Positions 3,029 to 20,399 of a DNA stretch of 32,169 bases are shown piece after piece. The DNA is from Octopus bimaculoides. Taxonomy: Eukaryota. Numbering within the stretch: position 1 is the first letter of the stretch; every line of letters starts with the position of its first letter. Under the pieces are notes generated by a model that was given only the letters and a program-made list of their open reading frames with translations, was not told the origin of the DNA and ran no database searches. The position numbers and the translations under genes are program-made. The stretch lies in contig NC_068985.1 in NCBI RefSeq assembly GCF_001194135.2, positions 14,392,247 through 14,424,415 on the forward strand, given 5' to 3'.

Positions 3029-3909
3029 AGCATGTAATTCGGATCATTTTCTCTCCTGTATCTTCGGATATTTACGCTATATATTTCATATGTAACGTAA
3101 ATAAATCCTAATTTATTTACGATACATATTAAACAAAAGCAGCTAAAATGCTTCGAGAACGATTCGCAATAACTATTCAACATTTACTGGTCTTCTTGAG
3201 CTATTACAGGAATGCTTTTCCCCAGGACAAAATTTGAAATTAACCCTCAACAAAAAATTAATAAATAAAAGGCATAATAAACTGAAACCGAAATGACGAT
3301 GAAATAATCTGGGGCTGAGGACGAAATGACCGACAGCCAATTGTCCTAATATCATATTTACATGTCATATACTACCAACTTAGAAGAGGCAGGCTTGTGT
3401 TTATGATCTGCCCAGGCACTACATGCAAGTGGAATTTATAAGAGTAATGTAGAGCCTGAAATCTGCAGAGTAGGGTCCTTAAGAAACAACTGGCCTGACA
3501 GATATCAGCGGTCTGTTTGTAGATAATATGTGTAAAGACAGTAACGCAAATTATTATTTATACAAACAAATATGTGCACACACATACATATGTATAATAT
3601 AATACAGGATATGTATATATATAAAACGTCCTGTTATTTGTATTGTGTACCATCTCTCCGTTTTTTTTCCCGTATGTATTCGCTGCTTTCTTCCAAGGAA
3701 TCTAATGCTCTTTGCTTAGTTTTTCCTTGGGGCTGGCCAAAGATAATCTAGAACTCGACTGAGGAAAGAAAACTCCGAATGACCCATCCTTGCTTTTTTT
3801 GTATCGTCTGGATGTTCTGCGTTCTCGTCCCAATTTTTGTACTTTTATGTATAAAAAAATATAGCGGCGTACGTGCACTTTGGTCTTTCTTATATATATA
3901 TATATATAT

Positions 3910-6779: not shown

Positions 6780-6990
6780 TGTGTGTGCGCGCATATACAT
6801 GTATGTATGCATGTATGTATGTATGCATGCATGTATGTATGCACGTAGGTGTGTGTATGCATATATGTATGTGTGTGTACGTGCATGTATATATGTATTC
6901 TGCATATTCATGTGTTCGTGTGTTCGTGTTTGTGTGTTTTTATGTGTGTGTGTGTGTGTGCGTTTGCATGTGTGTCCGTGTGTGTACCTC
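6780..6990. repeat. Degenerate (TG)n/(TATG)n microsatellite
   Basis: Seen directly; it produces the MYVC/CVCV pseudo-ORFs. Confidence 0.9.
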
Positions 6991-7536
6991 TGTCTCCTTG
7001 TTGGTAATTCTATTATGAGTGTTTTTTTTATTTTTTGGTAAGGTTGATGTGGGCGAATTACGGTGTTATGTGTGCAAGCGCAGCCCTAGGTAAACGGTTA
7101 AGTAACAGCCCGAACTTATAAAAACAATGAGTCTCTATTTCAATTTAATTTATAGCTAATTTAATGTTAATTTATTACCACCAGAATTGACTTTAAATAG
7201 AGATTCATTCTCTGTATAAGTTAGGGTCGGTTATTTTTTTTATCGCGGAGGGGAGAGAGGTGGGAAAGTAATTTGGCTCCTTCAAAGAGACAGCGACACA
7301 GTTGACGTGTGCTGAAATAGTCAATTCACAGCCTACTTATTATTTTATTATCTTTTTTTTTTTATTCTTCATTTTATTCTTTAGTTTGTCTAATACGTTC
7401 TTACTTTCTTCCTTATAATCTAACCTTTAGTCAGAATAGAAATTTACAATCAAATTGACCCTTTTATTTTCATTTGCTTATTTTTTTATCTCTGTATATT
7501 GTATCGTGATTGCAATTGTATCTTGTCTGTCACAGG

Positions 7537-7885
7537 GGAGGCGCAATGGCCCGGTGGTTAGGGCAGCAGACTCGCGGTCATAGGATCGCAGTTTCGATTC
7601 CCAAACCGGGTGTTGTGAGTGTTTATTGAGCGAAAACACCTAAAGCTCCACGAGGCTCCGGCAGGATATGGTGGCGAACCCTGCTGTACTCTTTCACCAC
7701 AACTTTCTCTCACTCTTACTTCCTGTTTCTGTTGCGCCCGTAATTCAAAGGGTCAGCCTTGTCACGCTGAATATCCCCGAGAACCACGTTAAGGATACAC
7801 ATGTCTGTGGAGTGCTCAGCCACTTGCACGTTAATTTCAGGAGCAGGCTGTTCCGTTGATCGGATCAACTGGAACCCTCGTCGAC
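7537..7885 (+). mobile_element. tRNA-derived SINE family 3
   Basis: A-box-like TGGCCCGGTGGTTAGG, B-box-like GTTTCGATTCCC, body TTTATTGAGCGAAAACACC..GGATCAACTGGAACCCTCGTCG. An inverted homologue lies at 19428-19810. Confidence 0.88.
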
Positions 7886-8289
7886 GACGTCGTTCTGCCA
7901 ATGAAAAGCTGGGAATGAAACGTTACTCTGAGCATACATTATCAAACTGAGTGAAATGGTGAGAGGATATAACAAAAGAACTTATTTAAACAATTACCTG
8001 AGGAGGTACATTCTGCACCTTGGATGTAAAATAATGATTGCACAATATCTGACCTATGTACTGACGGTGTAAGATTGCGTCGAAACGACTGTAGTGATTT
8101 TAAATAAAGGATGTGGTTTATTCCATTTTCTTTCCTTTATCTGTTGATGTAAACGTTGCAGAAACTATTGAATTCTTCATGATATATCCAGTGGCGGGAG
8201 CATTTCAACTGAATGATGACATCAGATACTCAATAACTGAGGACGAGCTTTGCACGGCATTTTATAAGGCTTTTAATCGGATCTCAATT

Positions 8290-8505
8290 AACTCTGCACG
8301 CGTGCGCGCGTGTGTGTATTTGTGTTGTGTTTGTTCTCCACCACTGCGTGTCTCTCGTAACTTAGTGGTTCGGCAAAAGAATCCAAGAAAATAAATATCA
8401 AAGTTAAAAATAAGTTTTGGGATCGATTCAATCGAGTAAAATCCTTCCAGGTGGTGCCCCAACCTGAACGCAGTCCAATGACGAAACAGATAAAAGCAAA
8501 AGATA
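8290..8505 (+). mobile_element. SINE family 2, 3' half (diverged)
   Basis: CGTAACTTAGTGGTTCGGCAAAAGA..GGGATCGATT..GCAGTCCAATGACGAAACAGATAAAAG. Confidence 0.75.
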
Positions 8506-8596
8506 AAAATATATGTTTAATATATATTTCGGAACCGTTAATAGCTACCTACCTGCCTACATACACACATGCACACATGCACACATGCACACATAC

Positions 8597-8972
8597 ATTG
8601 AACATTAGTGCAAGTTAAAAAGTAGAGCAGCCACAAAGCAAAAGCACAACCGATCAGATATCGTTGTGTGAGACTACAAAAAAATATATATATGCTTTGC
8701 TGTGGAAATCAGCTGCCATCTGGACGCTAATATGGTCAGAAAAACACAGGAGAAAGAGGGCATCTATGGACCACAGATAAGGAGTTTGCAATTCCTCTAC
8801 CCAGGATACACTTCCAGCTTCATACATATCATGTACCAACCCGTCTGTATCAAAGTATGGTTGAACTTTGGGTTCCTAAGGAGAGAACGCAACTACCATA
8901 GTCTATATGCTATAAATGATCAAGATACCTGGGACAATTACAATTTGCAAGACCTTAAGATTTAAAAGATGA
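8597..8972 (+). mobile_element. Non-LTR retrotransposon fragment, restriction-like endonuclease (RLE) domain, R2-group, pseudogenised
   Basis: Manual in-frame translation ATKQKHNRSDIVV*DYKKIYICFAVEISCHLDANMVRKTQEKEGIYGPQIRSLQFLYPGY matches the RPDIVVWD..EISCP..EK..Y..L RLE motif. The stop at 8669-8671 replaces Trp. Confidence 0.75.
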
Positions 8973-9019
8973 TAAATCAAAATGATTTTCTTCACAATCT
9001 TGCTTCCAAACACTTAACC

Positions 9020-9468
9020 TGTAAAAATTAACTCAGAATTAAAAAGAGAAAACATATTTGGGAATCTACAGCTATTCTATCCTGGTTACAAATTCAGGTT
9101 TGTAGCTGTAGTTTTGGGGGCACTGGGATATGTAATACTCTGCCTAAATACCGATCTTGAGAAATTAGGCTTCTCAAAACTAAAAAGGAGAAAGCTGATT
9201 CGAAGACTAGACATCCAAGCTATCATTGGAACTGTAAAAGTCTATAAACTTTTCCAGAAGTTTATCATTTAAGTATATATGAGCATGTCTAGATATACAG
9301 CTATATGCGTGAGAATACATACATAAATCAAAACATAGACCTGCATATGCATGCATGCATACATACATACATACATACATACATACATACATACATACAT
9401 ACATACATACATACAAACCGGCTCTTTCTCTACTGGCAAGGAATCTTGAGATATACTTGAATAACGAC
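9020..9468 (+). mobile_element. Second RLE-type LINE 3' end (C-terminus, 3' UTR, then (CATA)n)
   Basis: Reading frame missed by the ORF track: FGNLQLFYPGYKFRFVAVVLGALGYVILCLNTDLEKLGFSKLKRRKLIRRLDIQAIIGTVKVYKLFQKFII* (stop 9270-9272). The 3' UTR has internal (CATA)n and ends GGCAAGGAATCTTGAGATATACTTGAATAACGAC, followed by (CATA)n. Confidence 0.8.
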
Positions 9469-9612
9469 ACATACACATACATACATACATACATACATAC
9501 ATACATACGTATGTATGTGCGTATATGCGTAACGAATTGTATAATAATAACCTTAGTGTGACAATATGCGATATCATTATATCATTGATAACCATATCAT
9601 ATCAAATTGACT

Positions 9613-10236
9613 GAGGCGGCAAGCAGCTGGCGGAAGGTGTTCAAAAAGTCTCTCCGCGGTATGAATTTTATTGCAAAATGAATATTTATAAGATGGTATA
9701 AGACTACAAAAGAATATATTAGACTTTACAATATATGTTTTCAAATACATCTTGGAGAGTCTGGTGCGGTATGGACTGTGTGGCTCATTAATGATTTGGG
9801 GGCGATTCTTGTACACAGAAACAAAGTCTGGCGGTGTTAAATCAGGTGATCTTGGTGGCCAAAGACCCTTCGAAATAATCCGTTCACCGAAAAACTCTTG
9901 AGGTAGCACCATGGTGATGCGCGTAGTATGTGCTGTAGCTCCATCTTGCTGAAAAATATGCATTATTAATTTCACTTTCAGTGAGTTGGCCTACAAATGG
10001 ATAGACAATATTTGAGCAATATCTCTCGGTGTTGATGGTGTCTTCAAAAAATTTACTGCGGAGAGACTTTTTGAAAACCCTGTAGAATGCTAAGCGGCAT
10101 TTTTTTCTGGTTTCACATTCTGAGTTCAAATTTCGCCGGGGTTGACTTTGCTTTTCACCCTTTCGGAATTGATAAAAAAAATACCAGTTAGGAACTTCCC
10201 CTTCCCCTCAAAAGTTTCGTACCTTGTGACTATTGT
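9613..10236 (+). mobile_element. SINE family 1 interrupted by a Tc1/mariner element
   Basis: Head GAGGCGGCAAGCAGCTGGCGGA at 9613-9633. The remainder (GAATGCTAAGCGGCATTT..GAGTTCAAATTTCGCCGGGGTTGACTTTGC..TACCAG) resumes at 10085. Confidence 0.75.
9634..10084 (-). mobile_element. Internally deleted Tc1/mariner (rosa/DD41D-related) element with TIRs
   Basis: TIRs AGGTGTTCAAAAAGTCTCTCCGCGGT (9635-9660) and ACTGCGGAGAGACTTTTTGAAAACCCTGTA (10055-10084). Transposase remnant FFEDTINTERY..FQQDGATAHT..RIISKGLWPPRSPDLTPPDF..VYKNRP. Confidence 0.85.
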
Positions 10237-11298
10237 GAAAGGACAATATCAAATTAACTCGCTTGCAGTCATGTGAGGTCTTCACCTGAAGTAGAGTTTA
10301 ATAACTTTCTGTCACGCAGAGATAAGTGTTCTATAATTATATTTTTAACGTATACAAACTAGCTCTAAGTCTAACTTGTTAAACTAAACTATTCAGTGCA
10401 TGANNNNNNNNNNNNNNNNNNNNNNNNNNNNNNNNNNNNNNNNNNNNNNNNNNNNNNNNNNNNNNNNNNNNNNNNNNNNNNNNNNNNNNNNNNNNNNNNN
10501 NNNNNNNNNNNNNNNNNNNNNNNNNNNNNNNNNNNNNNNNNNNNNNNNNNNNNNNNNNNNNNNNNNNNNNNNNNNNNNNNNNNNNNNNNNNNNNNNNNNN
10601 NNNNNNNNNNNNNNNNNNNNNNNNNNNNNNNNNNNNNNNNNNNNNNNNNNNNNNNNNNNNNNNNNNNNNNNNNNNNNNNNNNNNNNNNNNNNNNNNNNNN
10701 NNNNNNNNNNNNNNNNNNNNNNNNNNNNNNNNNNNNNNNNNNNNNNNNNNNNNNNNNNNNNNNNNNNNNNNNNNNNNNNNNNNNNNNNNNNNNNNNNNNN
10801 NNNNNNNNNNNNNNNNNNNNNNNNNNNNNNNNNNNNNNNNNNNNNNNNNNNNNNNNNNNNNNNNNNNNNNNNNNNNNNNNNNNNNNNNNNNNNNNNNNNN
10901 NNNNNNNNNNNNNNNNNNNNNNNNNNNNNNNNNNNNNNNNNNNNNNNNNNNNNNNNNNNNNNNNNNNNNNNNNNNNNNNNNNNNNNNNNNNNNNNNNNNN
11001 NNNNNNNNNNNNNNNNNNNNNNNNNNNNNNNNNNNNNNNNNNNNNNNNNNNNNNNNNNNNNNNNNNNNNNNNNNNNNNNNNNNNNNNNNNNNNNNNNNNN
11101 NNNNNNNNNNNNNNNNNNNNNNNNNNNNNNNNNNNNNNNNNNNNNNNNNNNNNNNNNNNNNNNNNNNNNNNNNNNNNNNNNNNNNNNNNNNNNNNNNNNN
11201 NNNNNNNNNNNNNNNNNNNNNNNNNNNNNNNNNNNNNNNNNNNNNNNNNNNNNNNNNNNNNNNNNNNNNNNNNNNNNNNNNNNNNNNNNNNNNNNNNN

Positions 11299-11418
11299 AA
11301 TGGACTGGAGCAACGTGAAATAAAGTGCTTTGCTCAAGGACACAACGCGTCGCGGGGAATTGAACTCACGACTTTACGATCGTAAGCCAAATGCCCTAAC
11401 CACTAAGCCACGCGCCTT
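11299..11418 (-). mobile_element. tRNA-derived CORE-type SINE family 4 (3' end in gap)
   Basis: Reverse strand reads GAAGGCGCGTGGCTTAGTGGTTAGGGC..GTGAGTTCAATTCCCC..GTGTCCTTGAGCAAAGCACTTTATTTCACGTTGCTCCAGTCC. Confidence 0.85.
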
Positions 11419-11419
11419 C

Positions 11420-11459
<40 letters not shown>

Positions 11460-11465
<6 letters not shown>

Positions 11466-11643
11466 TTGTGTATCTGTGTTTGTCCCCTCAACGTCATCTG
11501 ACAACGGATGTTGGGTGTACTTACATCCCCGTAACCCTACTGGTTCGGCAAAAGAAACCAAAACAATAAGTGCTAGGCTTACAAAGAATAAGTCCCGGGG
11601 GTCGATTTGTTCGACTAACAGGCGGTGCTCCAGCATGGCCGCA
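11460..11643 (+). mobile_element. SINE family 2, 3' half, abutting the piggyBac remnant
   Basis: GTGTTTGTCCCC..CCCCGTAACC..GGTTCGGCAAAAGA..GGGTCGATTTGTTCGACTAA..GGTGCTCCAGCATGGCCGCA. Confidence 0.85.
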
Positions 11644-12782
11644 ATGAGATAGGATCATAGAATCCTTTTGAAATTCAAATATTGTGCTGTTGATTTCTTT
11701 CTTTTCCATTTGTGAAAGCACTTGGAAGTTCTACTCTGTTCTTTCTAATTGTTCCAACTGAAGTAGTTTTCTTGCTAAGCAGCTTTCGAGCCAATTCTAG
11801 ACTTGTAAAAAAAATTATCACAAGTTATATTGCGACCAGTATTTTCAAGTTCATTTACTAGGTCTTCAACAACTCTTGGACCTTGATTTGTCTCTCTCTC
11901 CCTTTTACTGGGTCTTTTCCAGTGTAGATTTGCATTTTCCAGGCTAAAGAGGTATCACTGTCGCATATTGCCCAAGTTTTGATTCCATATTTCCTTGGTT
12001 TTGAAGGAATATATACCCGGAATGGGAAGCGCCCTCTGAATGAAACTAATTGTTCATCAACTGTCATGCATGGACTTGGAACATATCTATCTTGCAAATT
12101 CTGATTCCACATTTCAAATACTTCTCTTATGGGCTCCAATTTATCATCACTTCGCTTTTATCTTCTTGTACTAGCATCATCAAACGCAATACTTGTAAAA
12201 TCTGTTGAAATCTTCCCCGGCTCATAATTTTGTTGAATATTGGGCGGCCATCTTTTTGACTCCATAACTGTGTAGCATTTTCATGTTTAGACTTATAAAC
12301 ACATAGAATAATCAATCCAATAAATTTGTTTAGTTCAGAGTGATCAATTTCCTTCCATTTATCTTTGTGAACAACCTGACCTTCAAGAATTACTTCAAGA
12401 AGATTCTGGCACATAAAGATAGTAAAACATGTTTCAATGCTATCGCAAGACCTTTTAGCTACACAGGATGGTCCACATTCTTGGCACACAATATTGCAAG
12501 ATGAAGTTCCTACTGTTGCTTGAGTAAGAGGATTAGAATGCTAAACTTCTTGTCTGTCTCTGGAAACATATTGCTCATTCGTAATCTGGTGGTTACAGAT
12601 AATTGTTTTTGAGTATCTTCATCATCTGATGACGCAGAACCTAAACTGTCCAGCACACAATCACTTTCACCATCATCTTCAGAGCAATAGAAGGAATCAC
12701 TACTATCTTCTTCTCATTCTTTATTTAATTTCAATAACCTTTGCGATATTTGGTTTTCACTCAAGTTTTCACGTCTAGGCAT
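11644..12782 (-). mobile_element. piggyBac transposase remnant (PGBD-like), frameshifted and truncated
   Basis: ATG at 12782 starts an acidic N-terminus (MPRRENLSENQISQRLL..EEDSSDSFYCSEDDGESD). Later blocks: ELNKFIGLIIL..LWS..RPIF..MSRGRF; TVDEQLVSFRGR..YIPSKPRKYGIKTWAICD; ITCDNFFTS..VGTIRKNR. The first two catalytic Asp motifs are present; the C-terminus is absent from the window. Confidence 0.93.
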
Positions 12783-15367: not shown

Positions 15368-15996
15368 TATATATATATATATATACTCATACCAGAGTTT
15401 TGCAACACTGGTATTTACATGACTCATATATGAGAGGATTAAACTATTNNNNNNNNNNNNNNNNNNNNNNNNNNNNNNNNNNNNNNNNNNNNNNNNNNNN
15501 NNNNNNNNNNNNNNNNNNNNNNNNNNNNNNNNNNNNNNNNNNNNNNNNNNNNNNNNNNNNNNNNNNNNNNNNNNNNGTGACAGACCATGTCTGTCCTTGG
15601 CTGGCCTCAAATCTCACCTGCGAACTCATGGAAAACAAACTTCAACCAGCTATTCTGATTATATGTCTGTGCACACGTTTGAATGTTGTGTGTGCCAGAG
15701 GGTTTGCAAATTCAATGGGGGTCTTAAAAGACATGTTAGGATCCACAGTGAGCAGAACTTACTTGCAGGTATTGGTAGTGCAAATCAGAGGTGCAATCTG
15801 TGTGGGTGTTTTTTTCAAAACACTGTCTGGTTTAAAAAGTCACATTAGACGCCATGAACGGGCTAAGGTGTAGGTGCAGGAGGTGGTCAAACTCTGTGAA
15901 ATTGTAGACAACCACCATATATATATATATATACTCATACCAGAGTTTTGCAACACTGGTATTTACATGACTCATATATGAGAGGATTAAACTATT
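15368..15996 (+). repeat. Direct repeat of at least 80 bp flanking LINE copy 1 (15368-15448 and 15917-15996)
   Basis: (TA)n plus an identical 63-bp unique block CTCATACCAGAG..GGATTAAACTATT at 15386-15448 and 15934-15996. The left copy runs into N-gap 15449-15576. Confidence 0.9.
15577..15916 (+). mobile_element. LINE 3' end (probably RTE-related) encoding three C2H2 zinc fingers, copy 1
   Basis: DRPCLSLAGLKSHLRTH..FECCVCQRVCKFNGGLKRHVRIH..RCNLCGCFF[+1 T]KTLSGLKSHIRRHERAKV*, then a short 3' UTR ending GTAGACAACCACC and (AT)n. The second copy at 18255-18514 lacks the frameshift. The RTE assignment is inferred. Confidence 0.75.
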
Positions 15997-17012
15997 AAAA
16001 CTGAATATGTGAAGTATACTATGATACTTAACAAAGTCTCGTTGGCGTGCATTTAATGTTTTCCTGACGTCGATTGCATTTTTTTAGTGCTTTGTGACAC
16101 AACTCTGCGATGCTTTGAACAAAGCACTTACTCGTTGGTTGGTAATTTTCCAAATATGCTTCATGATGCTGATCTGACAGACAAAAAAAAAAAAAGAACA
16201 TAAAATTGTGCAGTACAACATTAAGAACAACTTCATGAAATTAAAGAGTTTGCAATTACAATCGGAATGTATGTAATAATTCAGGAAACATTCTTTCAAC
16301 TTGAACACTGAACATTCAACATTTCAAGTGATACTCGTATTAGACAAAATAGACTCTCTTCACAGCGCTGACAGCCTTATCAAATATATAAGTGTGTATG
16401 TATTATATGTTGATATCGCAAATGATATTCGTAAAACAACACGAAAGAACACAACAGAACAAACATACTTAAAAACATACCCAAAAAGAAACATCCAGAA
16501 ATCTGAAGAACATTAACAGAATAATTACATATGTTGAGACATACGGTGAGGTGTTGGGTGTATGAGATCCTCTTCTAGCAATTGTGTTTTAACAGGACAA
16601 TAAAAATCACGAGCAACATTGTTGGGGATGTTTCAACGTACTCAACATGTGAATTTGAAATTGTACCGATGAGAAAACCAAAATGATAATATAGCAGCAT
16701 CACAATAAAATCCATATACATCCCAGTGAACCACAACAATATACCTACCCACGCTAACTCCAGTAACTCTTGCCCTGGAACAATAACTACCTACTAATAA
16801 TCGTAGCAACGCGCACGTCCATGATGAAAGCATAAAGACTTTTATAAAATTAAAAGAAAGAAAGCATATTGAAACGGTTTCGATGAAAAAACTCAATGAA
16901 GCTTTCCAGAACTCAGTAGCAGCGCGAGTATCAACGTAAACACTATATTGGTTTCAAATTCTGGCACAAGGTCAGCGATTTTTTTGTCGATGATGATGAT
17001 GTTTTTGTTGCT

Positions 17013-17235
17013 AGACGGCGAGCTGGCGGAATCATTAACACTCTGGGAAGGATGCAAAGCGGCATTTCGTCCGTGTTTACGTTTTGAGTTCAAATTCCAC
17101 TGAGGTCAACTTTGCTTTTCATCCTTTCGAAACCGATAAAATAAATACCAGTTGAACTCTGGGGGTAGTAGATTCGATGTAATCGACTTAGCCTCTCCCC
17201 TGAAATTGCTGGCATTGGGCTAAATTTCCAAAATC
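17013..17235 (+). mobile_element. SINE family 1 monomer, tail C
   Basis: GACGGCGAGCTGGCGGAATC..GAGTTCAAATTCC..TAATCGACTTAGCCTCTCCCCTGAAATTGCTGG. Confidence 0.85.
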
Positions 17236-17305
17236 AATATAAATATGTCACACATAGACAAGAAAGAGAATAATACACAGCTCCTCTACAACATTTACGA
17301 CACAC

Positions 17306-17596
17306 AAGGCGGTGAGCTGGCCGGAACGTTAGCACACCGGACGAAATGCTTAGCGGTATTTCGTCTGGCTTTACGTTTTGAGTTCAAATTCCGCCGAGAT
17401 TGACTTTGCCTTTCATCCTTTCTGGGTTGATAAATTAAGTACCAGTTGCGTACTGAGGTCGATCTAATCGACTGGCTCCCTCCCTCCAAAATTTCGGGCC
17501 TTGTTCCTAGAGTAGAAAAGAATATTTTAAGGTGGCGAGCTGGCAGAAACGTCAGCTCACCGGGCGAAATGCTTAGCGGTATTTCGTCTGTCTTAC
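17306..17596 (+). mobile_element. SINE family 1: full tail-B monomer followed by a second truncated head
   Basis: Junction GAGTAGAAAAGAATATTTTAAGGTGGCGAGCTGGC at about 17510-17545, near-identical to the junction at about 24148-24183. Confidence 0.9.
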
Positions 17597-17724
17597 ACAT
17601 ACTTCATTCGATAATTCCTACATGTTGAATAAACATGTACAATTGTGTGATTCCTATTAGCAAATGAAATATGTGTAACGGTGAATAATAATGTCAAAAG
17701 ATTTTCCAGATTCCTAATTTGTTT

Positions 17725-18015
17725 ATCCATCCATCCATCCATACATACATACATACATACATACATACATGCAGACATACACATACACACACACATACAT
17801 ACATACATACTTACATACATACATACATACACACACATACACACACATACATACATACATATACACATACAAACACATACACACACATATATACATACAT
17901 ACTTGCATACATACACACACATACACACATACATACACACTTATATATATACATACATACGTACATACATACATACATACATACATACATACATACATAC
18001 ATACATACATACAAA
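17725..18015. repeat. Long degenerate (TACA)n/(CA)n microsatellite, about 290 bp
   Basis: Seen directly; it produces the HTYI/MYVC pseudo-ORFs. Confidence 0.95.
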
Positions 18016-18254
18016 CATTAAAGTCTGTCATACCGGCCATGATGAAATACTACAAAGTATAGAAAATATGAAATACCACAAGGAATATAAATAAAACATA
18101 AAAAACAGACAGTGTTGGAACTCTTTTAAACAAAATAATATATTCCTCTATACACAATCATACAAAAAAACCCCCCTTTTTTGTATTTATTTTTGTATTT
18201 ATTTTTGTATTTATTTTTACATACATATATACATAGATACTTACATACATACAT

Positions 18255-18514
18255 GGTGGTTGTCTACTCCTTAAACAGAGTTTGACCACCTCCTGCACCT
18301 ACACCTTAGCCCTTTCATGGCGTCTGATGTGGCTTTTTAAACCAGANNNNNNNNNNTTTCATGGCGTCTGATGTGGCTTTTTAAACCAGACAGTGATTTG
18401 AAAAAACACCCACACAGATTGCACCTCTGATTTGCACTACCAATACCTGCAAGTAAGTTCTGCACACTGTGGATCCTAACATGTCTTTTAAAACCCCCAT
18501 TGGATTTGCAAACC
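18255..18514 (-). mobile_element. C2H2-tailed LINE 3' end, copy 2 (5'-truncated)
   Basis: Reverse complement of 15690-15916 with about 12 differences. Reads ..CNLCGCFFKSLSGLKSHIRRHERAKV* in frame, with a (TATG)n tail on the minus strand. Contains a 10-N gap (18347-18356) with a 34-bp overlap artefact. Confidence 0.8.
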
Positions 18515-18636
18515 GATAAAATAAATACCAGTTGAACTCTGGGGGTAGTAGGTTCGATGTAATCGACTTAGCCTCTCCCCTGAAATTGCTGGCATTGGGC
18601 TAAATTTCCAAAATCAATATAAATATGTCACACATA

Positions 18637-18775
18637 CATACATACATACATACATACATACATACATACCTGTGGTTGATGTTGAAATTCCAATGAAAGA
18701 GTATTGGATCTCGGCTAGAAACGGCTCTCTATTGACAAGAAATCTCGAAATAAACTGAATAATGACATACATAAA
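18637..18775 (+). mobile_element. Isolated 3' UTR end of the RLE LINE between (CATA)n tracts
   Basis: AACGGCTCTCTATTGACAAGAAATCTCGAAATAAACTGAATAATGACATACATA is homologous to 9415-9475. Confidence 0.65.
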
Positions 18776-18886
18776 ATCGTCTATAAACAGACAGCTAAGC
18801 ACACCCCAAACACCACAAAACACAAATACTAATCATAAAAAATGCAGAATGTGTCGCTATCAGCCCAATTTGGATAAAATAGACTA

Positions 18887-19101
18887 CAGTAATCCGTTGC
18901 CATATCGCGGTTCACCTATCCCAGTTTATTATTTAAGCTTACGTCGATTCCTCCGTGATGTTTTTTTGCATTTGTAATAAAATAAATATAGACAAATGAT
19001 AAAAATAATTTTTAAAAATATACATTACTGTTTCTACTTCGCGGATTTTCACCTATTACGGAGTGGGAAACGTAACACACTCGATAGTCGAGGGATTACT
19101 G
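18887..19101. mobile_element. Tc1/mariner (Tigger/pogo-like) MITE with TA TSD
   Basis: TA|CAGTAATCCGTTGCCATATCGCGG ... CGATAGTCGAGGGATTACTG|TA. Confidence 0.8.
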
Positions 19102-19116
19102 TACATATAAGCACAT

Positions 19117-19195
19117 AAATAGCTACAACGTTAGTAAATAGCTACAATGTTAGTAAATAGCTACAATGTTAGTAAATAGCTACAATGTTAGTAAA
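19117..19195. repeat. 19-bp minisatellite, 4 copies (TAAATAGCTACAATGTTAG)
   Basis: Four tandem units with one substitution; no spacers, so not CRISPR. Confidence 0.95.
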
Positions 19196-19427
19196 CTTAT
19201 TATATGCTTGAGTAATATCTTAAGCACTAAAAAAAATCTACTAGACCGTCTTAACACGGTTGCGCATAGAACAACAAAAGATATATCTATTTTTATATTT
19301 CTATTCTCCCGTTTTTAATAAGCTGTCAACGAACGTGCGACTGATATGACTGGTGAAGTATATTAAAAGATTTGAAGCAAGAAGAGAAAAGTTGTGCTCA
19401 TCCAAGCCCTTCTCATACATACAAATT

Positions 19428-19810
19428 GTTGACACTCCGTCGGTTACGACGACGAGGGTTCCAGTTGATCCGATCAACGGAACAGTCTGCTCGTGAAATT
19501 AACGTGCAAGTGGCTGAGCACTCCACAGACACGTGTACCCTTAACGTAGTTCTCGGGGGAAATTCAGCGTGACACAGAGTGTGACAAGGCTGGCCCTTTG
19601 AAATACAGGTACAACAGAAACAGGAAGTAAGAGTGAGAGAAAGTTGTGGTGAAAGAGTACAGCAGGGTTCGCCACCATCCCCTGCCGGAGCCTCGTGGAT
19701 CTTTAGTTGTTTACGCTCAATAAACACTGACAACGCCCGGTCTGAGAATCAAAACCGCGATCCTATGACCGCGAGTCCGTTGCCCTAACCACCGGGCCAT
19801 TGCGCCTCCA
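19428..19810 (-). mobile_element. SINE family 3, full length
   Basis: Reverse complement of the 7537-7885 family, ending GGAACCCTCGTCGTCGTAACCGACGGAGTGTCAAC. Confidence 0.9.
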
Positions 19811-20399
19811 CTATACATACAAGCACACACAGCCATAAGCACTAGCAGACACACTAACAAACACACAAACACATACATAAGCACACGCATGTACGCACAC
19901 ATACGTGTTTCCACACCCGTATGCTCACATTCACACACAAAAATGCATTAAAAAAAACCAAATAAACGTTCACAACCTCATTGAAATGTGAGGAACTCCA
20001 GCATGACCGTAGCAGCATGGCTTAAACGCAACATATAAAATAATAAAAGGATACAATTTTGAACCCCTGTGTAAAGTTGATAGCCTGTATTCACCATAGA
20101 TTTTATCATTTCGAGAGCAATCAAACTAAATGAAACTGATAAGCTTCTAATCTTCTCTGACCTCATCGGTCAGAGAAAATCTATCTTCTGTATAGAAAAA
20201 ACATTACCAGATCACAATCAGGAACATTACTGGTTTATTGTTAATTGCTGTGTATACAAACTTGATCTCATTTAAACTGCCCAGACTAATTTCTCTAATG
20301 AAGGATATAAGTGAAGTAGAAACTAGTCTAGTTGACACTGTAATTTGTCTGTTTTTCGCAGTGTGGTTAAAATTTCACGTATAAAATGGTGCTTTAGTA

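Follow-up and report, generated by a model that had tools for sequence, protein, structure and literature searches.

A 5'-truncated RTE-like LINE between the arms of a 127-bp direct repeat in Octopus bimaculoides: a likely long target duplication at a microsatellite edge

Octopus genomes are rich in recently active RTE elements and short interspersed nuclear elements (SINEs), whose part in genome restructuring is debated. One such element, RTE-2 (RTE-2_OV / RTE-2_OB; Petrosino et al. 2022, PMC9115989), encodes an endonuclease, a reverse transcriptase and a C2H2 zinc finger within one open reading frame (ORF; 1109 aa in RTE-2_OV) and has a microsatellite 3' end; no long target duplications are reported for it in that paper. 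The 3' simple repeats of RTE elements seed or match genomic microsatellites, with a correlation between the cleavage site and the repeat of the tail (Tay et al. 2010, PMC2887409; Nishiyama & Ohshima 2018, PMC6007223). Here we describe an RTE-like long interspersed nuclear element (LINE) in a 32,169-nt stretch of the O. bimaculoides genome (hereafter the window; assembly GCF_001194135.2, contig NC_068985.1, positions 14,392,247 to 14,424,415), where a 5'-truncated copy lay between the arms of a 127-bp direct repeat. The repeat is likely a long target duplication, best explained by target-primed insertion with a long staggered break.

In a self-comparison of the whole window, only the 127-bp pair and an 80-bp pair of direct repeats had 99% identity or more. 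The first comprised the following features.

17013–17256, plus strand: full octopus-type SINE (ending near 17236) and about 20 bp of non-SINE flank, delimited by alignment with 13 other SINE copies of the window
17130–17256, no strand: left arm of the 127-bp direct repeat, 126/127 identical to 18510–18636
18510–18636, no strand: right arm of the repeat, consisting only of the SINE 3' half and flank

This direct repeat had been described in an initial annotation of the window and was recovered at the same positions, the sole mismatch between the arms being A at 17172 and G at 18552. About 105 bp of it was SINE and the final ~20 bp (aatataaatatgtcacacata) was non-SINE flank, the SINE end being placed near 17236 by alignment of the 14 SINE copies. 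The same alignment agreed with the annotation that an intact SINE (17013 to ~17236) was completed by the left 127-mer and that the right 127-mer held the SINE 3' half only, being preceded by LINE and not by SINE sequence. Since the repeat included the non-SINE flank and its arms were 99% identical, against 72–90% identity of the other SINE copies in the window to each other, it represented a duplication of this particular locus; two independent SINE insertions were ruled out on the same grounds. A target duplication of the SINE itself was sought by eye in the region sequence, and the best match was 7 nt, at chance level. The same SINE 3'-end subfamily was present in an Octopus vulgaris transcript from the supplement of PMC9115989.

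The near-identical repeat flanked the whole insert, and the LINE 5' end was joined to the right arm. The repeat had the geometry of a target-site duplication, as the annotation had claimed. A bracketed insert was likewise found, its length falling from the claimed 1253 bp to ~1209 bp after an overlap at an assembly gap (below) was collapsed. Both 127-mers and all four of their junctions were internal to contigs, neither arm touching a gap. Exact-sequence look-ups of five window ORFs spanning or flanking the junctions (17090–17215, 18488–18595, 17295–17600, 18614–18823 and 16893–17093) gave no match.

The LINE sequence at the right arm was interrupted by a gap of 10 N.

18255–18514, minus strand: 3' fragment of a 5'-truncated LINE (copy A) with the last 55 ORF codons (two C2H2 fingers), a stop and a ~50-bp 3' untranslated region (UTR), identified by its match to a second copy (copy B, below) and to Pfam zf-C2H2
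18313–18390, no strand: assembly artefact, an exact 34-bp duplicate on either side of the 10-N gap (18347–18356); the 34-mer is single in copy B and the frame is restored on collapse

The gap flanks were identical over 34 bp (18313–18346 and 18357–18390). This 34-mer occurred once in copy B, which stayed colinear on both sides of it, and the frame was continuous across the collapsed overlap, reading ...RCNLCGCFFKSLSGLKSHIRRHERAKV (in a longer rendering of the uninterrupted frame, ...VCKSNGGFKRHVRIHSVQNLLAGIGSANQRCNLCGCFFKSLSGLKSHIRRHERAKV). Because the 34-mer was single in copy B and the frame was restored on collapse, what the assembly shows as a gap is an overlap of two contigs that was left unmerged, the true gap length being about minus 34. 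After collapse copy A measured 216 bp; the annotation had rightly recognized a 5'-truncated LINE there, but its length of 260 bp was wrong. The collapsed copy was identical to 15701–15916 of copy B at 204 of 217 alignment columns (94%). As to a possible mis-join at the gap, the sequence was continuous and in frame across it, and the join lay inside repeated LINE sequence: contigs X (15577–18346) and Y (18357–21394) met within this multi-copy element. The seven other gaps of the window had no flanking duplicates; the 128-N gap beside copy B had them.

At its 5' end the LINE shared a few bases with the SINE.

18510–18514, no strand: 5-bp microhomology AAACC at the LINE 5' junction, common to the LINE consensus (copy B) and the SINE

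The junction read ...tttgcAAACCgat. The LINE consensus there was ...tttgcAAACCctc, continuing AAACCctc, and the SINE was ...tttcgAAACCgat, that is, cgAAACCgat. The 5-bp overlap, already noticed in the annotation, was thus present in both parents of the junction. A spurious abutment would reproduce five LINE bases with a chance of about 1 in 1000, indicating that the junction is biological and that an assembly artefact at this point is unlikely.

To identify the LINE, its ORF end was compared with protein profiles and sequences. C2H2 fingers were found by Pfam. The 91-aa ORF end had no match in a word-indexed homology search, whereas a full HMMER scan matched a 748-aa protein (P0022) with RVT_1 at residues 167–436, the same three spaced C-terminal fingers and the same ending; its C-terminus was 51% identical to the window ORF end over 75 aa. 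Relatives of this protein (P0151, P0153 to P0155 and others; 1097–1200 aa, on contigs of ~4 kb) carried PF03372/PF14529, PF00078 and C2H2 domains. Endonuclease and reverse transcriptase were assigned to the window LINE through these relatives, the window copies themselves being truncated. Judged by them, the element is an apurinic-endonuclease (APE)-type, RTE-like retrotransposon without long terminal repeats, the assignment to the RTE clade following from the domain architecture and the published description of RTE-2_OV (PMC9115989). Penelope-like and Dong/R4 elements, which also target microsatellites (PMC8557442, PMC13282606), were rejected, since the relatives carried an APE and not a GIY-YIG or restriction-like endonuclease. 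Rfam gave no match anywhere in the window.

Both window copies reached GTAGACAACCACCAT, followed by (GTAT)n or (AT)n, and had a stop codon ~50 bp upstream. The 3' end of copy A was GAGTAGACAACCACCAT then (GTAT)n, and those of three related loci were GAGTAGACAGCCATCAT(GTAT)11 (L002), ...CAATCACCAT(GTAT)n (L001) and GAGTAGATAACCACCAT(AT)6 (L005). The pattern among the relatives was GAGTAGACA.CCA.CAT, with CCAyCAT then (GTAT)n, and the terminal 17-mer with GTAT or AT tails was kept in all three. A profile of the closest fragments added three old copies (67–70% identity) on short Logan contigs (SRR11869391), by which the 3' end was confirmed. Since the window copies and L001, L002 and L005 shared this ending, the 3' end and the simple-repeat tail are genuine features of the family. 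The tail, described in the annotation as (TATG)n, and the association of the family with microsatellites both held up.

The terminal motif GAGTAGAyAnCCAyCAT was kept in distant members (L002, 10990–11080; L005, 870–895; L003, 1003–1021), with a (GTAT)n or (AT)n tail; it is a candidate for the element that the reverse transcriptase recognizes. In L001, a metagenome contig of the European Nucleotide Archive (3816–3906, 8060–12780), the (GTAT)n tail was expanded to an array of ~4.7 kb; directly 5' of the element was a further array, of (GT)n/(GTAT)n, so that this element was situated between two arrays of its own tail repeat. The 32-kb window held a high density of (CATA)n/(GTAT)n arrays, numbering at least 11 (e.g. 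at 6799, 9350, 9475, 13419, 14693, 17728, 18218, 18632, 22806, 26853 and 27029), some of which may be tails of, or targets for, this family.

Between the left 127-mer and the LINE lay 961 bp of other DNA, and a microsatellite was found at each end of the LINE-bearing part of the locus.

17257–18217, no strand: 961 bp of non-LINE DNA between the left 127-mer and the LINE tail, made up of the next six parts
17257–17305: 49 bp of unique sequence
17306–17525: full SINE
17528–17598: SINE 5' fragment
17599–17716: 118 bp of unique sequence
17717–18018: (CATC/CATA)n array
last 200 bp: unique sequence, including a 12-mer tandem repeat at 18178–18218
18218–18254, minus strand: imperfect (GTAT)n tract immediately adjoining the LINE 3' end, being its own tail, target microsatellite or both
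18632–18669, no strand: perfect (ACAT)9.5 abutting the right 127-mer, complementary to the LINE tail repeat

The unique parts of the 961-bp segment had no second copy in the window. Its place between the LINE tail and the left 127-mer was that expected of 3' transduction, which the annotation had proposed; there was, however, no second tail at its end, and 3' transduction of the 961 bp is not established. The two microsatellite tracts were of similar length (37 bp at 18218–18254 and 38 bp at 18632–18669) and differed at 3 of 35 positions, compared with 1 of 127 for the 127-mers (Fisher p = 0.03). On these figures the tract 18218–18254 fits better as a tail brought from the donor than as duplicated microsatellite. 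Beside the LINE tail, the 12-mer repeat was a perfect tandem array (TTTTTGTATTTA, 3.4 units, 18178–18218) adjoined by an A7-C6-T6 tract (aaaaaaaccccccttttttg, 18150–18177), and together with this neighbouring tract it was the source of AATAAA hexamers. A LINE 3' end was also sought beside the 300-bp (CATA)n array at 17717–18018, and none was found.

The second direct repeat of the window surrounded copy B.

15369–15448, no strand: left arm of an exact 80-bp direct repeat, starting with (TA)9 and abutting the gap at 15449–15576
15577–15916, plus strand: LINE copy B, of the same family, its 5' side cut by the 128-N gap, ending ...GTAGACAACCACCAT then (AT)8
15917–15996, no strand: right arm of the 80-bp repeat, immediately adjoining copy B at its 3' end

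Here the whole (TA)9 lay inside the duplicated segment, the nick position was directly after the array, and the microsatellite halves were 17 and 18 bp. Either the 80-bp repeat marks a second long target duplication, or it was falsely duplicated where the insertion is heterozygous. Among the other copies, the evidence for long duplications was divided: the repeat of copy B was exact but had one arm at a gap, and L001 and L002 showed no duplication of at least 12 bp; L003 to L005 were too old or too short for duplication length to be judged. Because these distant relatives (L001 and L002) had no long duplication of unique sequence, long staggers are not shown to be a rule of the LINE family.

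From these features a single event can be proposed. [quoted passage not shown] The other strand would have been broken at 17129|17130, the two breaks lying ~122–127 bp apart. The cDNA 3' end may then have paired with the far break through the 5 bp of AAACC, and fill-in would have duplicated the 127-bp stretch between the breaks. The 961 bp would have been copied from RNA in the same event, either from a read-through transcript of a source copy, which would be 3' transduction, or because reverse transcription switched to the LINE RNA from another RNA template. The data show the repeat, the identity of the LINE with its 3' end and tail, the microhomology and the continuity across the gap; we infer how the steps followed one another, that the break was staggered and, most of all, that the 961 bp derived from RNA.

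We hold this single-event reading tentatively, at a probability of roughly 0.4. It is supported by its accounting for everything through one event, by the better fit of the tract 18218–18254 as a donor tail, and by the finding that the only other direct repeat of such identity in the 32 kb also brackets this LINE family. Several observations weigh against it. The 961-bp segment ended ...CTTTCTTGTC, directly abutting the 127-mer, with neither (GTAT)n nor poly(A) as a second tail, and three AATAAA hexamers occurred on the LINE strand within 32 nt past the LINE tail. The conserved family 3' end suggests that the enzyme recognizes it, and a start 961 nt further on is thus disfavoured. Only 5 nt of microsatellite would lie on the primer, compared with the whole (TA)9 duplicated at copy B; by this comparison, the end of the (CATA)n array at which the annotation had placed the first nick would be the wrong one. 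The near-equal tract lengths (37/38 bp, and 17/18 bp at copy B) are those expected if the microsatellite was duplicated. Finally, the relatives L001 and L002 lacked a long duplication, and published RTE duplications are mostly 7–20 bp (PMC6007223, PMC2887409, PMC1291365, PMC5850137, PMC1852546).

Several of these points are met if the 961 bp was native to the locus. The (GUAU)n tail of the LINE RNA would then have used a (CATA)n array of the locus for priming, of which 18218–18254 and 18632–18669 are now the separated parts, and there would have been no transduction. The geometry would be that of copy B, with the primer side containing the microsatellite in full and the nick placed just past the final unit; the halves would be near-equal (37 + 38 bp), as they are, and L001 also has GTAT-type arrays on both sides. 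Tail-to-microsatellite priming fits the conserved 3' end with its (GTAT)n tail, no unusual RNA is needed, and the 961 bp, lacking a terminal tail and with its three AATAAA so close to the LINE tail, is in keeping with such an origin, as are 5-nt microhomologies at both new junctions (AAACC and ACATA). The difficulty is the second 127-mer. It would have arisen either from a second-strand break ~1.1 kb off, with fill-in skipping from 17256 to the microsatellite, or as filler, end joining having copied 127 nt from a template 1.1 kb distant. The account requires a templated insertion of unusual length, or else a 1.1-kb stagger in which internal sequence was skipped. The microsatellite halves also differ at 3/35 positions while the 127-mers differ at 1/127. 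Though it fits the locus just as well as the single-event reading, on balance we regard this account as somewhat unlikely. Two separate events would likewise agree with copy B in geometry and microsatellite lengths: a LINE insertion with a ~165-bp duplication (microsatellite plus 127-mer) would have been followed by insertion of the 961 bp at the microsatellite/127-mer boundary of the downstream copy, for example through another reverse transcription at the same hot spot, such microsatellites being the preferred sites of the family. This is possible and less economical than a single event. The second event would be needed exactly at the boundary and in the short time allowed by 0.8% divergence, and the 961 bp is not recognizable as a single element and has no duplication of its own, which leaves this sequence of events very unlikely.

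The second 127-mer, and with it the second 80-mer at copy B, might instead be false, allelic or paralogous pieces having been placed in tandem by the assembly because of a heterozygous insertion or the multi-copy LINE. In this gapped short-read draft assembly, each LINE copy has a gap within it or at its edge. Unmerged 34-bp ends flanked the 10-N gap, where contigs X and Y were joined inside the repeated LINE, and the left 80-mer of copy B stopped exactly at a gap, the classic appearance of a false duplication at a heterozygous insertion. A related octopus RTE is polymorphic among individuals (PMC9115989), and the lone mismatch between the 127-mers could be a heterozygous single-nucleotide polymorphism. 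Repeat arms met gaps, however, only in the 34-mer and the left 80-mer; neither 127-mer was at a gap and their four junctions were inside contigs. AAACC at 18510–18514 agreed with the LINE consensus, for which a spurious abutment has the ~1/1000 chance given above; differences between allelic contigs would need to begin, on either side, precisely where the repeat ends, and the seven other gaps lacked flanking duplicates. An artefact of this kind is therefore judged unlikely. More general than the single-event reading is the claim that the family is active, routinely primes on whole microsatellites, breaks the second strand 80 to >100 bp (possibly up to 1 kb) away, and can carry or copy neighbouring non-element DNA, and that it would thereby regularly give rise to local duplications and shuffled sequence in cephalopod genomes; we consider this improbable.

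Other features of the window were observed apart from the LINE copies. An inverted repeat of 83 bp (30461–30543 and 30822–30903; 95% identity, arms ~280 bp apart) could be a small DNA transposon's terminal inverted repeats. An inverted pair of 378 bp with 89% identity (7522–7886 and 19447–19823) belonged to another interspersed repeat family. A near-perfect palindrome of 65 bp (92%) was located at 1587–1651, and a 19-bp tandem repeat (TAAATAGCTACAATGTTAG, 4.2 units, 98% identity) at 19116–19195. A second 10-N gap (22691–22700) lay between runs of the complementary microsatellites (AC)n and (GT)n, its ends showing no overlap, and may reflect the collapse of an array or a join made in inverted orientation.

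Coming from one locus in a gapped draft assembly, the finding is modest by itself. If it is true that a LINE family habitually makes 80–130-bp duplications at microsatellites, short-read insertion callers would be biased by it, and false or real tandem duplications would arise in draft assemblies. Such a family would also lend itself naturally to the study of where APE-type LINEs cut the second strand. If flanking DNA is truly carried along, transduction would reach beyond L1.

Among known systems, the window LINE resembled octopus RTE-2 in its host and in the make-up of its relatives (1100–1200 aa with APE, RVT_1 and C2H2). To see if it was the published O. bimaculoides element, 75 bases recovered from the DIFF field of variant call format (VCF) files, belonging to the MELT reference RTE8BF6ALB220127 (its last ~400 bp), were compared with copy B; no offset rose above background (best 0.71). 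Identity with the RTE-2_OB reference was rejected because these bases mismatched copy B at any offset, indicating that the window LINE is of a different family or subfamily. The MELT calls for the octopus RTE were mostly one-sided with a null target-site duplication (TSD=null), and were uninformative on long duplications. In its RTE-type organisation the window LINE also resembles C. elegans RTE-1, which reportedly is flanked by a duplication of ~200 bp. RTE-1 has no C2H2 fingers, unlike the relatives of the window LINE. Long target duplications are indicated for R9 of bdelloid rotifers by the title of the report on it (Gladyshev & Arkhipova 2009, cited in PMC8557442). R9 is specific to ribosomal DNA, uses a restriction-like endonuclease and makes a fixed duplication, whereas the duplications of the window LINE vary (80 and 127 bp).

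Some L1 insertions carry long duplications. Target duplications of L1 extend up to several hundred nucleotides (PMC1291365). The window locus resembled L1 3' transduction in having non-element DNA between the element tail and the downstream duplication. In L1, a second poly(A), placed after a polyadenylation signal further downstream, closes the transduced segment, whose donor locus can be found; to our knowledge, 3' transduction is established for L1 only. The 961 bp of the window differed in having no second tail, and the family 3' end was conserved, suggesting stringent recognition. In the studies of RTE elements at microsatellites (PMC2887409, PMC6007223), the overlaps were 1–2 nt and the duplications short, whereas whole arrays of 18–38 bp lay on both sides of the inserts in the window. 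With the co-inserted flanking DNA as an unproven extra, the locus thus compares with known systems as a LINE insertion with a long target duplication, a kind for which there is precedent.

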